A stretch of DNA of 64,000 nt from Pecten maximus (lineage: Eukaryota). The notes under the pieces were generated by a model. That model was not told where the DNA came from. It saw only the letters and a list, made by a program, of their open reading frames with translations, and did not search any database. The translations under genes and the position numbers were made by a program. Position 1 is the first letter of the stretch, and each line of letters opens with the position of its first letter. Below are positions 23,860-30,904 of the stretch, in pieces. Where the stretch lies: the NCBI RefSeq assembly GCF_902652985.1, contig NC_047019.1, forward strand, positions 31,868,001 through 31,932,000, given 5' to 3'.

Positions 23860-24560
23860 AACTCATGTGCTGGAATTTCAAGACGCAAAGAAATATTTCA
23901 AGAATAGAAGAAAATAAATAAATAAATACTGTAAATAAAAATGAAAAATGAAATCACATGAATGAATAGAAAAATAAAGTTTAATGGAAAAATGATTACT
24001 GCTTCCAGAAAATATATGTTAACAGCTAACGTGAGACAATTAATATTGTCATATCAAAACCGGACACATCTGTGTTATGAATCTGTTAAGAAAATAAAAT
24101 ACGTTTTTGATTGCAAATTTGAATTATATTTTCTTTATCATTAACAGATTTATATATTGTATATATAAATTATATCTGTATGTACATGTAACTCCATAAC
24201 CATGTATAATTGCATTTACAATTTATTTATACCAATTATTGACAGTATTTTCTAAAGAGTACCAAACTCAATCCTTTATCTAACTTAGGATTATAAACCT
24301 AAGATTAGAAAAGGCTTCATATCCGTAGTAAAGTCCATTATTCGAAGTGCATCAGGAAAATATCTGTTTAGTTAAATAAAATATGTATACACGCTCTATA
24401 TAAATATGTATACATACTTTTTATTGATACTTATACTTACTATATACTTGATACGACATGTGATAATTGTTTTCCACAATGATACGTAGAACATGTTGTC
24501 ATATACAATGTAAGTCTACGTAGTTCACCGTAACAGATTGAGGACAACCCATATTTAATA

Positions 24561-24727
24561 TGAGTCACCTAAATATATATATATACACATTACAGCATAC
24601 CGCTCCCTTAACTATATTCAAAGGAAATCCCTGAATTTCCGGGGAAATACCAGGAGTTCAAGTATAGTTGGCACGTGTATATCGGTGTGTATTTCAAGGA
24701 ACTTCCCCTGGAGAGCGAACTGTAAGT
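24561..24727 (+). promoter_or_regulatory. Putative immune-inducible promoter and non-coding first exon of the CARD-CARD-TPR gene
   Basis: AP-1 TGAGTCA 24561-24567. TA-rich stretch 24574-24585. TTC-N4-GAA at 24617-24626 and 24637-24646, TTC-N3-GAA (GAS) at 24693-24701. kB-like GGAAATCCC 24623-24631, GGGAAATACC 24642-24651 and GGAACTTCCCC 24698-24708 (GGGAAGTTCC on the minus strand). E-box CACGTG 24672-24677. Donor GTAAGT 24722-24727. Confidence 0.55.
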
Positions 24728-25459
24728 TGGTTTTGTTAATGCATGTTATATGATAACAGAAAATCTCTCGTTGTAACATTTTACATGTGGATACATACGG
24801 TGATACACGATGATACGTTATTGCTTACGGAATAACAGTTTACTTATATATCTATCGTATGGTGACTGATACGTACTTCACCAATGTAGTATGTTTGATA
24901 TAAACTGGTATGAACATATTAGACGATAGGTTCGATCTACGTAATAATTACAATGTATAGATGTCTACATTTATATGATGTTTACAAAATGGAATCTTAA
25001 TACATGTATGCTTGATGTATTATGTAGATCAACGAAAGCCTTAGGGTGTGCCGCCGTGTCCTGCTTTACTGACAATCATCACTTTATTATATACAGTAGA
25101 TGGTTTGATTTCTGGAAGGAATAATCATTTTCACACTACCTTTTCCGTATAGCTACAGTTTAACTCATAGAATCCATATTAATTCACTACAGACATGTAA
25201 ACCACTGACATCTACATGGCTCAGTGAACTTGTACTGGTGTAAATAGTGTGTACGAGGTCATTCACCGATCGCGTGTTTCCCCCGGACTTTCACACCACA
25301 CACTGTACAAGTGTCACTTAATGTTGTCGACGTTATTATACATATATATGTTTTTAGTTAACTCCATATGGACAGCTGAGTACAGTCCAGTAAGAGTAAA
25401 GAGGCTTATAATGTTTGGCAATATTTCACTAATTATAAAAAGGACCAATTAATTTTGAA

Positions 25460-25620
25460 CTGTACTGGTATTTCACTAACTATTAGTACCAATATTTCAC
25501 TAACTGTTAATACCGGTATTTCACTAATTATTAGTACAGACATTTCACAAATTATCAATACTGATATTTAAGTAACTATTAGTACAAATATTTCACTCAA
25601 TATCCATACCAGTATTTCAT
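25460..25620. repeat. Degenerate 24-bp minisatellite (same family as 26415-27730)
   Basis: tatttcactaactattagtacc(aa/gg) units. Confidence 0.75.
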
Positions 25621-26414
25621 GTATATTTATACTTGTACAATCTGACCATGGGTTTATTTGATTCTAGCCAATAATTTGTATTTGTTTATTATACCCTATG
25701 TGGCCTAACCTTATTCTTGTTTCCTAACAAAGTATATATATATACCGGTATATATATATATTTGTATGTGCCTTCATATTATTCTTGTTACAAAACAAAA
25801 TATAAAGATGTTAATACATATAAGTAGCACATGTATATTTATACTTGTTTTACCTGATTTTTACAATTTTTATTTTATTCTATGTGACTTGATGTTATTC
25901 CTGATTCCTAACAAAATAAATATAAAGTTAAAAGATATATGTAGCACGTGTATAGTTATACTTGTGTATCTGGCCATGGATTTATTTCATTCTAGCCAAT
26001 ATATTTGAATTTGTTTATTTCATCCTATGCCTTGATCCTGTTTTTGTTTCCTAACAAAGTATAAAGATGTTGATAAAACTATGTAGCACAAATTAGTATA
26101 TTTATACTTGTGTATGACATGAGCTTACTTTGTGCCTGGGTGTTTTTTTTTCTTCAGAAAACTGTTTGCTACTTATCATGTATTGTTAGACTGGATGAGA
26201 TCATGAGTCTAAATAGTTTGTGTTATTGTTATGTGGTAATTTAAGTGTGAGAGTATAAGATGTGTAGCATGTGTGTCAGTGGTGTGACGAGTGAGAGCCC
26301 CGGTGTGTAGGGACATTGTTTATATCTTGAAGGCTGACCCCAAGGCCCCAACCTTGGCAGCCTTCCAACGTATACATGTTCTGGGGGATTAAATGTTTGT
26401 GTAAAAAAAATTAC

Positions 26415-27730
26415 TCACTATTAGTACCAATATTTCACTAACCATTAATACCAGTATTTTACTAACTATTGGTACCAATATATTTCACTTACTATCAATA
26501 CCGGTATTTCACTAGCAATCAGTACAGATTTTTCATTAACTATCAATAACGGTATTTCACTAACTATCCACACAGATTTTTTTACTAACTATCTGCACCG
26601 GTATTTCATTAACTATCAATACCCGCATTTCACTAGCTATCAAGACAGATTTTTTCACTAACTATCTGCACCGGTATTTCATTAACTATCAATAACGGTA
26701 TTTCACTAGCTATCAAGACAGATTTTTTCACTAACTATCTGCACCGGTATTTCATTAACTATCAATAACGGTATTTCACTAGCTATCAAGACAGATTTTT
26801 TCACTAACTATCTGCACCGGTATTTCATTAACTATCAAATCCCGCATTTAGATCACTTTCACAACCGGTATTTCACTAACTATCTGTACCTGTATTTCAC
26901 TAACTATCAGTACCGGTATTCCAGTAACTATCAGTACACTATCAGAACTGGTATTTCTCAAATGTACCAGAAAAGGTATTTCACTAACTACCAGTTCCGG
27001 TATTTCACCAACTACCAATACAGTATCAGTACATGTATTTCACTAACTATTAGTTCCAATATTTGACTAACAAAATTTCACTCACTATCAATACCGGTAT
27101 TTCACTAATTATCAGTACATGTATTTAAACTAACTGTAAGTACCAATATTTCACTAACTAAAAGTAAAAATATTTGACTAACTATCAGTACCAATATTTG
27201 ACTAACTACCAGTACCAATATTTGACTAACTATCAGTACCAATATTTGACTAACCATCAGTACCGGTATTTCACTAACTATCAGTACCAATGTTTGACTA
27301 ACTACCAGTACCAATGTTTGACTAACTACCAGTACCAATATTTGACTAACTATCAGTACCAATATTTGACTAACTACCAGTACCAATATTTGACTAACTA
27401 CCAGTATCAATATTTGACTAACTATCAGTACCAATATATGACTAACTACCAGTATCAATATTTGACTAACTATCAGTACCAATATTTGACTAACTACCAG
27501 TACCAATATTTGACTAACTACCAGTACCAATGTTTGACTAACTACCAGTACCAATATTTCACCAACTATCAGTACCGGTATTTCACTAACTATCAGTACC
27601 AATGTTTGACTAACTACCAGTACCAATATTTGACTTACTACCAGTACCAATAGTTCACCAACTATCAGTACCGGTATTTCACTGACTATTAGGACCGATA
27701 TTTCACCAACTCTCAGTACCGATATTTCAT
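26415..27730. repeat. 24-bp minisatellite in the presumed first intron of the CARD gene
   Basis: Unit actaacta(t/c)cagtaccaatatttg, about 50 copies, homogeneous at 27170-27650 and degenerate on the left. It produces the spurious TNYQYQYL / VLVVSQIL ORFs. Confidence 0.95.
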
Positions 27731-28235
27731 TGACTAAATTGGCAAAGCTGTTTTGCTTGTTTGTCGTATATCACTAATTACAGAAAGGGTTCAATGAATG
27801 TTGGGTAGCGCTTTTGGTCTGATTGAAAGATATAATATTATGTTTGCTACTCTTTCACTGTATCAAATATATTTTGTAATACCGTACTTTGCTACTAATA
27901 AAATGGTCCGAGACGATGTCTGACAGTATTTCACCTATGTATAGAAGTGATAAAGCTATTGTTTGGAGGTATATGCTTATTGAAAGGAATCTGATTATGA
28001 GCGAGATCAGTCTAATACAGAAATAAGTTGGTTTTAGACGGCAGTATTTCATTACAGAAGGGACCCAGCCAGTGATTTGATTAATGCACACATATTTCTT
28101 GATATTGGTCATCATGTTATAGCGGGATAATATCTATACATCTACAATTAAAATATTTCATTTTAATAATATTTGTGTTTGTTTTCATAAAAAAACTAAC
28201 TATTTTTACTTCTCCCACAGGATGTAAACGTAACT

Positions 28236-30398
28236 ATGGAAACAATACAAGAACATACCCTCCGAAGAAACCAGGTACAGTTCGTTGATGACCTTGACCC
28301 AAAAGATGTCCTTGACGTTTTATTAGATGACGGAATCCTCACAGAGAATGACTATGAACGTGTGAGTTCAGGTAAATCAAGGAAAGAACGATGTCGGATT
28401 CTTTTAGCTTTGCTTCCAACACGTGGCCCTACGGCGTATGGTTCGTTCCAACGAGCACTGAAGCAAAGTATTTACCCACATTTGGCTGAACTGATGCATA
28501 CTGATACATTAAGTAATAATGATCAACAGCATCTTAACATGACAGGTCGCGGGAGTAAGGATGGACTGAGGCATTCTAGCGTATGTTCTAAATGCGAGCC
28601 ACTTTTCCCAAGTAAATTTTCAGATCCGGAGCTTGCAGTGACACTGAGGAAAAACTGTTGTTTACTAATGGGAAATATTGAACCAAATGATATATTAGAC
28701 TGGCATTACCAGGAGTTTGTGTTGGGTAGGGATGAATGTGACAGAATCAGATCCGGAAAAACAAGAAAGGAAAGATTTGTCTTATTTCTGGAAGAAATTT
28801 CGAAATGCCAAAATAATAATGTATTATCTGTATTTAAGATGTCATTAGAAAAGAAATATGGTTTCATTGTGGTAAAATTGGACAATAATGCTGCAGAAAC
28901 CATTCCGACAGACGCCGTCTCTAGATTGACGGGACCTGTTCAACACGACTCGGAAAATAATGGAACTGGACGCTCGACTTCAGATTGTGCTTTAAGAGAA
29001 GAAGGTGATTATTTTAGTCTCCGTATACAACAGGGAACAAATGTCATCGAAGATAAAACAGGTAGCGATATTACATCAACGTATTGTCCTACAACAGTTG
29101 TAAAACACACGAAAAATACGATAAAACGTCATTGTGATTTTGAGTCCGTGTCGTCTGATATGGGACTGTCTCAAGCAGACTGTGCATTTATACCGAACCA
29201 GCATTTGCTTCCCATGACTGAATCTAATATGCAAAAATCCAAACGACGAACGATTCCACAGTATTCAACCGATTCCGAAGACGATTTCTTTTTTAATCAG
29301 GTTTACCAACGGCACCACAGGACAGGTAAAAAACATGAAGATGGCTGGTCAGAACATGCTCCGGACAAAAACGAAAAAAGTTCTGCAGACACAAGGAAGG
29401 TATCTTTCTCAGTTAATCCTGGATCCTTAAACCCGGGAAGTCTTCCCAACAGACGACTAGAGGTAGCGTTTAACCTGCTCAGCACGATGATTAACCAGGG
29501 GCAATATGAAAAGTTTGAACATTTTTCTAACGGATTAAAACAAAAATACCATCGCAATGCTGATATGATGTGTATAATTGGATATTTGAATGCCAGCAAA
29601 GACCTGTTCAAAACCAATTTTGATTCGGCGAAAAAGCATATCACTTCTGCAATGGAACTGGTTCCAAAGACAAGTAATCCTAAATATTTTACTCTTGAAT
29701 TATTCACGGCATTGACACGTATGTATATTACACGGAAGAAGCTCCAAAAACTTCAAAGAGTACTCGATGACGCAAAAATGATAATTGCGTCAGATCCGGT
29801 AGGTTGCACTGGACGAGCTGCAGGTTGGCTGTATATGAACGATGCTAGGAACATGACGGCTCTGATTGGCATGCTTAATGTACACAAACCGAACTTTATA
29901 GCTGCTTATAAAAACCTTCACGAACAGGCAAAACGAAGTTTTCGGTTGTCTCTTACAAATTTCCAAAGAGACGGTGGCAAAGATGGACCTTTTGGTTTTG
30001 GTTATGCTCTATGTAGACTAACGATATTACTACTACAGTGTGGGGATAGTGGCCTGACAATGGACGTGCTTCATCCAGATTATGACGATATAGAACTAGC
30101 TGGAGGCTACCTTCGTCAGTTAGAGAACTCAAACATTCCCATACCAAAGATTTTAGAAGTGCATTATCTCCTCGCTAAATGTGATTACCAATACCGTCGA
30201 GGAAATACTGTCAGGGCTCTTGAGTATGCTGACGCAGCACATCGTCTCGCCACGGAGATCAACATGTTAGAATTTACGGAGCATGCTCTCAATAGAGTCG
30301 TCTTCCTGAGAACTAGGACGCCTTTAGTTATCCAGACAGTGGACGAAGAAGAGGCTTCGCGGATTCTGTTTGAGGAATCTTCTGATAACAGTCACTAA
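28236..30398 (+). CDS. Tandem CARD-CARD plus C-terminal TPR-like helical domain protein (720 aa, single coding exon)
   Basis: Uninterrupted 2163-nt ORF. CARD1 aa ~1-88 (LRRNQVQFVDDLDPKDVLDVL...LTENDYERV..GKSRKERCRILLALLPTRGPTAYGSFQRALK...YPHLAELM). CARD2 aa ~130-216 (LRKNCCLLMGNIEPNDILD..YQEFVL..DECDRIRSGKTRKER..LFLEEI). S/T/D-rich linker. Helical repeats aa ~405-700 with TPR-like motifs (HYLLAKCDYQYRRGNTVRALEYADAAHRLA). Polypyrimidine/CAG acceptor ends at 28220, 15 nt before the ATG. AATAAA at 30686. Confidence 0.93.
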   Translation: METIQEHTLRRNQVQFVDDLDPKDVLDVLLDDGILTENDYERVSSGKSRKERCRILLALLPTRGPTAYGSFQRALKQSIYPHLAELMHTDTLSNNDQQHLNMTGRGSKDGLRHSSVCSKCEPLFPSKFSDPELAVTLRKNCCLLMGNIEPNDILDWHYQEFVLGRDECDRIRSGKTRKERFVLFLEEISKCQNNNVLSVFKMSLEKKYGFIVVKLDNNAAETIPTDAVSRLTGPVQHDSENNGTGRSTSDCALREEGDYFSLRIQQGTNVIEDKTGSDITSTYCPTTVVKHTKNTIKRHCDFESVSSDMGLSQADCAFIPNQHLLPMTESNMQKSKRRTIPQYSTDSEDDFFFNQVYQRHHRTGKKHEDGWSEHAPDKNEKSSADTRKVSFSVNPGSLNPGSLPNRRLEVAFNLLSTMINQGQYEKFEHFSNGLKQKYHRNADMMCIIGYLNASKDLFKTNFDSAKKHITSAMELVPKTSNPKYFTLELFTALTRMYITRKKLQKLQRVLDDAKMIIASDPVGCTGRAAGWLYMNDARNMTALIGMLNVHKPNFIAAYKNLHEQAKRSFRLSLTNFQRDGGKDGPFGFGYALCRLTILLLQCGDSGLTMDVLHPDYDDIELAGGYLRQLENSNIPIPKILEVHYLLAKCDYQYRRGNTVRALEYADAAHRLATEINMLEFTEHALNRVVFLRTRTPLVIQTVDEEEASRILFEESSDNSH

Positions 30399-30904
30399 AT
30401 GTTACTATGTAGACGTAACTACTACCTTGAAAGGTGGATATGGCAAATGAATCTCATTTTGATGGATTGCACCTCATTTTGGCAACTGCGGGCATACTAC
30501 CGTATACGTAGTCAAAATGAGGTACAATTCTTATATTTACATAAAAAAAAGTTTAAATACAGCACGAAAAAATTACAATTCAGAGTGTATTGCGACGTTG
30601 GTAACAACGGCAGCTGTGGTGGTTGCTAAGATGAAACAGTTCTAGTGAATCTACATGAAGACACCAGTATTGTTAACAAAATTAAAATAAACAGCTCAAC
30701 ATTTTTGTTTAATACCTTTTGCGTTTTTAATTAAATGACATATTCACAATCCACAAGTCCCGTTTCTGATTAACGTTGGAGTCATGTACAGCGTGTATTG
30801 ACACAGATTTAGTAGTGACATGGTCGGATGTTCTCTAGGAACTGTACACATCAGCCGTTTGTTATTACCTTACATCGTGGAGAGAAGTTAAATATGTACC
30901 TATT

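Follow-up and report, generated by a model that had tools for sequence, protein, structure and literature searches.

A stretch of 64,000 nucleotides (nt) of the genome of the king scallop Pecten maximus (NCBI RefSeq contig NC_047019.1), referred to here as the window, carries on its forward strand at 28236-30398 an intact open reading frame (ORF) with an ATG start, 720 codons and a stop. The encoded protein consists of two N-terminal CARDs, a disordered linker, a TPR-like superhelical domain and an acidic tail, and it has no nucleoside triphosphatase (NTPase) module. The gene is real, spliced and transcribed. The reading that we tentatively prefer, and that falls only a little short of probable, is that the protein is a cytosolic death-fold adaptor or regulator of CARD-caspases that does without an NTPase. 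As such it would provide a clean example of death-fold signalling architecture lacking this module, and it would set a second, overlooked CARD adaptor beside CRADD in phyla that have been reported to lack Apaf-1.

The Pfam CARD model matches the whole protein in two stretches (E-value 1.3e-24), and each segment scanned alone exceeds the curated cut-off of 23.9 bits, with 67.9 bits for amino acids (aa) 1-95 and 27.6 bits for aa 110-225. In a full-length AlphaFold2 model based on 30 members of the family, compact helical bundles, as expected of the six-helix CARD fold, are predicted at aa 3-86 and aa 131-220, with block values of the predicted local distance difference test (pLDDT) of mostly 81-95. 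DSSP divides each bundle into seven segments, and the seven helices of CARD2 have block pLDDT values of 81-94. The same model predicts disorder (pLDDT below 50) at aa 91-113 and aa 223-402 and, over aa 406-694, a helical repeat. The original prediction, made from the letters of the window alone, had described two CARD-like repeats, a linker rich in Ser, Thr and Asp, and roughly 300 aa of helical repeats, and all of these parts are borne out, including the assignment of the second repeat to the death fold. The domain boundaries and their coordinates are collected in Table 1.

No NTPase, helicase or protease domain accompanies these parts, again as had been predicted. A motif scan of the 720-aa protein found no Walker A, Walker B, QACxG or SHG motif and no DExD/H motif in a helicase context, the sole DExD/H-like tetrapeptide being DECD at aa 166, within CARD2. 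A Pfam scan of the protein found no NACHT, NB-ARC, helicase, RIG-I C-terminal or Death domain, and a hydropathy scan found no transmembrane-like stretch, the highest Kyte-Doolittle mean over 19 residues being 1.2, within a TPR helix. The protein thus lacks the helicase core and C-terminal domain that follow the tandem CARDs of RIG-I-like receptors (RLRs), and its transcript runs at least about 140 nt past the stop codon. It likewise lacks the NACHT or NB-ARC domain and the Walker A motif of the STAND NTPases, the region between its CARDs and its TPR-like domain being predicted as disordered. It has two CARDs and an acidic C-terminal tail where MAVS has a single CARD and a C-terminal transmembrane anchor, and no Death domain follows its CARDs as in CRADD/RAIDD.

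As judged from profile searches, both CARDs resemble those of Apaf-1 and RAIDD in type and not those of RIG-I, MDA5 or MAVS. A CARD1 profile made from eight scallop paralogs and searched against PDB chains matched RAIDD best (1.5e-12) and Apaf-1 next (1.5e-11), with further matches to CARD8, CARD9, CED-3, caspase-9, ICEBERG, CARD11, CED-4, cIAP1, Dronc, NLRC4, ASC and NOD1. No RIG-I, MDA5 or MAVS chain was found among the 53 solved CARD sequences that this profile matched at E<=0.01. The CARD2 profile matched the Apaf-1 CARD best (7.5e-4) and also matched CED-4. At the N-terminal edge of CARD2, the cysteines C117, C120, C141 and C142, arranged as C-x-x-C and C-C (window 28584-28661), are conserved to at least 90% in 30 members of the family, and these four residues may together bind zinc and so fasten the N-terminal extension to the domain. 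To our knowledge, no comparable cysteine cluster has been described in other CARDs.

The C-terminal domain is predicted to have the TPR-superfamily fold, a superhelix of helix-turn-helix hairpins. Modelled alone with 52 relatives, the C-terminal 326 residues reached a pLDDT of 90.9 and a predicted template modelling score of 0.86, with 13 repeat helices in hairpins and a short terminal helix. VIA-align placed the model closest to APPBP2 (Z 20.8), the human APC/C chain 4ui9_O (19.2), which we take to be APC5, MalT domain III (19.0) and phage Rap (18.5), with many other TPR proteins next; the matches to TPR proteins span Z values of 15-21 over 215-277 residues at 8-14% identity. Foldseek against PDB gave no match for the domain at E<=0.001, with template modelling (TM) scores of about 0.45-0.54 to TPR/SUPR ligand binders. 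In the ESM Atlas, the feature neighbours are MAU2/SCC4-like TPR clusters and the structural neighbours are TPR arms of bacterial regulators, which serve as leads only. Because the VIA-align, Foldseek and Atlas matches are all generic TPR proteins, the fold appears to be a generic TPR/SUPR one with no special link to IFITs.

At the level of sequence, no Pfam model reached its curated cut-off on the domain or on its paralogs, where only sub-threshold TPR models were found (TPR_2 with an E-value of 0.73 in the window protein, TPR_12 with a best E-value of 3.1e-5 in the paralogs; all listed scores lie below the curated cut-offs). A profile of the domain matched nothing among all PDB sequences, IFITs included, the best hit being a designed repeat at an E-value of 7. 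By these searches the region maps to no enzyme or curated family and is a previously undescribed helical-repeat domain without a Pfam entry. Its most conserved segments are aa 520-539, 578-595 and 601-609, and conservation peaks in a pair of Gly-rich loops with the helix lying between (aa 520-539 and 578-609), which points to a defined binding site. The all-helical hairpin superhelix is shared with IFITs and with other TPR/SUPR binders such as MalT domain III, Rap/NprR, LGN, APPBP2 and APC subunits, whereas the invariant Gly/Cys-rich loops are the family's own.

A word-indexed search with aa 400-720 as the query returned 52 proteins, all of them with a CARD and 44-85% identical over the domain, from scallops, unionid mussels, clams, Dreissena, Mytilus, the limpet Lottia (65%) and the brachiopod Lingula (63%). 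Searched exhaustively with HMMER, 1.84 billion protein cluster representatives yielded only 85 with the domain (E<=0.001), and additional named members are from the abalone Haliotis, the chiton Liolophura, Lingula and the annelid Capitella. All named members belong to the molluscs, annelids or brachiopods, and because Lingula and Capitella carry them the family is not mollusc-specific. We found no description of this family in the literature, and searches for "CARD-TPR" and for six family locus tags returned nothing. When Pfam was applied to 40 diverse relatives, CARD was the sole family above its curated cut-off, some relatives had no match at all, and no NACHT, NB-ARC, helicase, Death, TIR or caspase domain was present; every relative with a Pfam match pairs a CARD with the TPR-like domain. 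Homologue lengths are mostly about 0.6-1.6 times that of the window protein.

The Ylistrum ortholog is 85% identical to the window protein over the C-terminal domain and 67% over the full length. Across phyla, the TPR-like domain is still 63-69% identical to unionid, Lottia and Lingula proteins, and the strong conservation of this partner domain of the CARDs reaches back more than half a billion years. The P. maximus genome holds eight intact paralogs and one fragment, each match lying in an uninterrupted open frame, and one paralog (L004, 717 aa) has the starting residues, length and domain score of the P. maximus RefSeq entry LOC117323289. The window gene is only 47-55% identical to these paralogs, lower than its identity to the proteins from unionids, the limpet and the brachiopod. 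A maximum-likelihood tree of 105 domains puts it on a short branch with the Ylistrum ortholog, and the two together are sister to longer-branched pectinid-specific duplicates. On this phylogeny, the window gene is a slowly evolving, ancestral-type copy of the family. The ratio of nonsynonymous to synonymous substitution (dN/dS), calculated by the method of Nei and Gojobori against two scallop orthologs, is 0.04-0.11 over the folded domains, a rough figure because dS exceeds 1 and is saturated. These values indicate that all three folded domains are under strong purifying selection, and since 85 homologues exist and the folded domains are constrained to this degree, the gene lies far beyond chance.

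Conservation of this kind also bears on the possibility that the protein is a direct pathogen sensor of the IFIT type, in which the TPR superhelix would bind a foreign RNA or a microbial molecule and thereby free the CARDs. This is highly improbable. The TPR-like fold does match IFIT1 and IFIT5 weakly, and sensor arms of STAND proteins, such as MalT domain III, are among its best structural matches; however, these matches are generic, with APPBP2, APC5, Rap and LGN equal or better. IFIT5 was found by Foldseek at an E-value of 7.8e-3 and a TM score of 0.32, below the unrelated TPR proteins APPBP2, APC5, MalT domain III and Rap, and no IFIT appeared among the top 50 VIA-align rows. There is no sequence relation to IFITs, and the family is no closer to them than to any other TPR protein, so that only the generic TPR fold remains of the IFIT analogy that had been drawn. 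Furthermore, 63-69% identity from scallop to brachiopod, a TPR-domain dN/dS of about 0.07 and a set of only eight paralogs, with no large expansion, are unlike known arms-race sensors and argue against one. A conserved endogenous partner of the TPR-like domain fits these values better than a fast-evolving sensor of pathogens does.

Beyond these proteins lies a divergent clade of longer ones (936-1187 aa; P0094 at L001:6001-9294, P0095-P0101 and P0134-P0139), each in a single open frame and all from ENA or Logan assemblies. By Pfam they begin with a CARD; a linker of about 500-600 aa then leads to the TPR-like domain, here at 26-28% identity, and a second CARD-like segment, seen by eye only, lies directly before that domain. 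The Ylistrum balloti ortholog (L020:5001-7268) contains in its linker a 150-nt segment that RefSeq takes as an intron; it is in frame and free of stops, starts with GC and not GT, and if read through gives a protein of 755 aa instead of 705. For the dN/dS calculation alone, the Ylistrum coding sequence (CDS) was rebuilt minus this segment; the searches called for no spliced model, as a single exon holds the CDS of the window gene. Among the named relatives there is no protein from oysters (Crassostrea, Ostrea, Saccostrea, Pinctada), heterobranch or caenogastropod snails, or cephalopods, though their genomes are NCBI-annotated, and the family may have been lost or have strongly diverged in these groups.

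The linker gave no Pfam match and contains an acidic Ser/Thr cluster at aa 343-353. Across the family the linkers are unalignable apart from one motif, D-x-x-D-G-(A/S/C)-x-hydrophobic, which occurs in 39 of 101 linkers where 7.1 would be expected from shuffles. The D-x-x-D-G form is present in heterodont clams, in some unionid copies and in the clade of about 1000 aa (relatives P0015, P0019, P0036, P0094 and others), while Lingula and the remaining unionid copies keep only an [IV]-D-G core. Caspases may cleave at this motif, or it may dock as a peptide onto the TPR-like domain. In the linker of the Potamilus relative P0005, a related sequence, NQIDGAVPIL, occurs three times. After the last TPR hairpin, the tail carries three hydrophobic residues (ILF, VLF or LLF) and then acidic residues and Ser (aa 707-716; 30354-30383), an arrangement kept in bivalves, Lingula and Lottia, and its modelled helix could serve as a peptide for docking or autoinhibition.

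The phyla represented among the named members are exactly those reported to be without Apaf-1. No CARD-containing Apaf-1 was known in Mollusca to Li et al. (2017), who inferred a distinct mechanism of caspase activation (PMC5550854), and no Apaf-1 was detected in molluscs or annelids "despite an extensive search" (Krasovec et al., 2023; PMC10959488). The absence was later extended to brachiopods, Apaf-1 being found in flatworms, and CRADD was proposed as the activator, the only CARD-containing one in these animals (Krasovec et al., 2024; PMC11463336). The published surveys state that the mode of CARD-caspase activation in these animals is unknown (PMC5550854, PMC10959488, PMC11463336), and a defined protein makes this question directly testable. 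Across the scallop genome, the Pfam NB-ARC model gave four weak exon-level matches of at most 37 bits, which are consistent with the reported lack of Apaf-1 and are no proof of it. The scallop does have a CRADD/RAIDD-like gene (L017:5241-6676, minus strand, on contig C7 at about 39.16 Mb), in which a Death exon (22.7 bits) comes after a CARD exon (40.6 bits), and its product is a candidate partner of both CARDs. Separately, two more CARD proteins in single open frames are encoded on another chromosome, some 27 kb from each other (contig C1, about 39.58-39.62 Mb): one of 392 aa with two CARD stretches (L018:6440-7615, plus strand) and one of 608 aa with a single CARD and about 500 aa without a Pfam match (L019:4266-6089, minus strand).

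A bold extension of these observations, and an unlikely one, is that the CARD-CARD-TPR family supplies molluscs, annelids and brachiopods with their missing platform for CARD-caspase activation, standing in functionally for Apaf-1 without nucleotide-driven oligomerisation. The TPR-like domain would then be a sensor arm that answers an intracellular death signal, and the tandem CARDs would nucleate the assembly of caspase-2 or caspase-Y. With Apaf-1, CED-4 and Dark the scallop protein shares an N-terminal CARD of the same sequence type, the Apaf-1 CARD being a top solved match of both CARD1 and CARD2, and a C-terminal repeat domain that is a possible sensor arm. In contrast to them, it has no NB-ARC/AAA+ NTPase or Walker A motif, two CARDs and not one, TPR-like repeats in place of WD40 repeats, and a disordered linker of 180 aa, and outside the CARD no homology is detectable.

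The more modest reading given at the outset, that of an NTPase-less adaptor or regulator of CARD-caspases, would work as follows. The C-terminal superhelix would use its invariant central loops to bind a conserved endogenous partner or ligand, and the bound partner would localise or cluster the protein. The two Apaf-1/RAIDD-type CARDs would recruit a CARD-bearing partner by homotypic CARD-CARD assembly, the likeliest partners being caspase-2 or caspase-Y, the CARD-caspases of these animals, or CRADD, and caspase activation would thereby be promoted or tuned without an NTPase oligomerisation module. The flexible linker, through the D-x-x-D-G motif of many relatives, might offer a caspase cleavage site or a docking peptide for the TPR-like domain. 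In this regard the protein is like CRADD/RAIDD, whose CARD heads the solved matches of the CARD1 profile; both are small, enzyme-free adaptors presumed to feed CARD-caspases. RAIDD, however, is made of one CARD and a Death domain, which the scallop protein lacks, and the same genome holds a separate CRADD-like gene.

The effect on caspases could also run in the opposite direction. In the manner of CARD-only inhibitors such as ICEBERG or COP, the CARDs might cap or sequester assemblies of CARD-caspases or CRADD, the TPR-like domain giving regulated localisation or turnover. Such a decoy or brake would need no oligomerisation or enzymatic module, and the protein has none; the CARD1 profile also matches ICEBERG and a CARD-only protein; and the caspase-type D-x-x-D-G in many linkers would permit the brake to be removed by feedback. 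ICEBERG, CARD16-18 and CARD8 are likewise NTPase-free CARD proteins that modulate CARD-caspases, and some of them are among the profile matches. On the other hand, CARD-only inhibitors are usually short, lineage-specific and fast-evolving, whereas in this family two CARDs and a 300-aa domain stay strongly constrained in three phyla. The known proteins are short or FIIND-bearing and vertebrate-specific; the scallop family has a large conserved TPR-like domain and belongs to spiralian invertebrates. A decoy or brake seems doubtful.

Several points weigh against the adaptor reading as a whole. We infer the function from sequence, models and transcripts, and this applies to the partner, to the direction of the effect (activator or brake) and to the role of the linker motif. 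CARD similarity by itself names no binding partner, and the lack of an oligomerisation NTPase leaves no obvious route to proximity-induced caspase activation. The linker motif is degenerate in the window gene, where the aligned site reads SQADCAFIP (aa 312-320; 29169-29195), SQADC standing in place of D-x-x-D-G, and the scallop ortholog group has only SQAD(C/S/N) at this site. A predicted complex of the TPR-like domain with its tail (aa 403-720) and the two CARDs (aa 1-222) scored 0.00, which gives no verdict on gating. The complementarity with Apaf-1 rests on named sequences alone, most matches coming from unnamed ENA or Logan assemblies. Lastly, Pfam CARD_2, the RIG-I/MAVS-type model, scores 24 bits on CARD1 against a cut-off of 28.2, and precomputed Pfam matches list CARD_2 for several relatives; because the model is just sub-threshold on CARD1 and is listed for relatives, a link to RLRs or MAVS keeps some probability.

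The corresponding alternative is an antiviral or NF-kB adaptor of the RLR/MAVS type, whose tandem CARDs would engage MAVS or RLR CARDs while the TPR-like domain senses a ligand or gates the CARDs. Besides the CARD_2 scores, the tandem layout itself is like that of RIG-I and MDA5, putative STAT/kB-like motifs adjoin the transcript start, and, as a candidate parallel, a two-CARD, helicase-less protein of Aplysia is labelled IFIH1/MDA5 in RefSeq (PMC9334734). Against this stand the profile search, in which RAIDD and Apaf-1 lead the solved CARD matches with no chain of the RLR/MAVS type among them, the strongly purifying and not diversifying selection, and the fact that induction is unsupported. 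Two consecutive N-terminal CARDs are indeed shared with RIG-I, MDA5 and NOD2, but the scallop protein has neither the helicase and C-terminal domain of the former nor the NACHT-LRR part of the latter, and its CARDs are not of the RLR/MAVS type by profile search. Such an adaptor is quite improbable, and of the original interpretation the architecture, the two exons and the uncharacterised status stand, while its analogies to RLR/MAVS and IFITs and its restriction to molluscs do not.

The adaptor reading rests on a complete gene. Contigs assembled from public sequencing runs were aligned to window 24500-30499, and RNA-derived contigs link 24633-24721 to 28221 onward in a two-exon transcript, with the short first exon and single large coding exon that had been proposed. 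The splice joint is present in contigs of two runs from different studies: X3, which is presumed to be RNA and gave a contig of 2407 nt, and X8, a declared RNA-seq library. These contigs cover 24633-24708 and 24674-24708, respectively, and then resume at 28221; the 12 letters left between the two blocks by the aligner match 24710-24721 exactly, which places the end of exon 1 at 24721. Runs X1 and X15 also cover the intron and so behave like DNA. Positions 89-2367 of the X3 contig map to 28221-30499, and the contig extends about 40 nt beyond; the first downstream AATAAA/ATTAAA lies at 30681. Because the stop codon falls inside the same RNA contig, the ORF is a complete single-exon CDS. A piece of a larger NLR or RLR gene, which had been raised as a possibility, is thereby ruled out, the whole CDS lying in exon 2 of its own transcript, and the homologues are mostly of similar length.

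Table 1. Features of the P. maximus gene in window coordinates. The dN/dS ratios are rough, dS being above 1 and saturated.
Feature	Position	Strand	dN/dS	Evidence and remarks
Exon 1, non-coding 5' untranslated region (UTR), no ATG	24633..24721	+		X3 and X8 contigs; 5' end is a minimum (start of longest RNA contig)
Intron 1, 3499 nt, GT...AG	24722..28220	+		Donor gtaagt at 24722; pyrimidine tract and cag acceptor ending at 28220 (AG 28219-28220)
Exon 2: last 15 nt of 5' UTR, entire CDS, at least about 140 nt of 3' UTR	28221..30539	+		X3 contig
Minimal start-stop upstream ORF (ATG TAA)	28222..28227	+		Read from sequence; 8 nt 5' of main ATG
Complete CDS, 720 codons and stop	28236..30398	+		ORF, RNA contig, Ylistrum ortholog
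CARD1 (aa 1-90), Apaf-1/RAIDD-like	28236..28505	+	0.04-0.09	Pfam CARD, PDB profile search, block pLDDT 80-95
CARD2 (aa 117-222), N-terminal extension with four-cysteine cluster	28584..28901	+	about 0.10	Pfam CARD, model, PDB profile search
Disordered linker, 180 aa (aa 223-402)	28902..29441	+	about 0.55	pLDDT below 50, 30% Ser, Thr and Asp
Family-specific TPR-like superhelical domain (aa 403-700)	29442..30335	+	0.06-0.08	Model, VIA-align, HMMER
Acidic C-terminal tail (aa 701-720)	30336..30395	+		Alignment consensus; short modelled helix at aa 704-712

The ATG of the upstream ORF is the sole one of the spliced 5' UTR ahead of the main ATG, and this start-stop element could regulate translation. 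The GC content at the CDS is 0.38-0.39, compared with about 0.32-0.34 in its surroundings. No sign of a bacterial or viral origin was seen, the named relatives all being animal proteins and the sequenced examples animal-type genes. Putative kB-like and STAT-like motifs lie at 24600-24660, either on the 5' end of the longest RNA contig (24633) or immediately upstream of it, and would be promoter-proximal. Within intron 1, a tandem repeat with a period of 24 nt (8 codons) spans about 27105-27653 and is skipped by the RNA contig; it gives rise to long periodic ORFs on both strands, TNYQYQYL-like on the plus strand and VSQILVLV-like on the minus strand.

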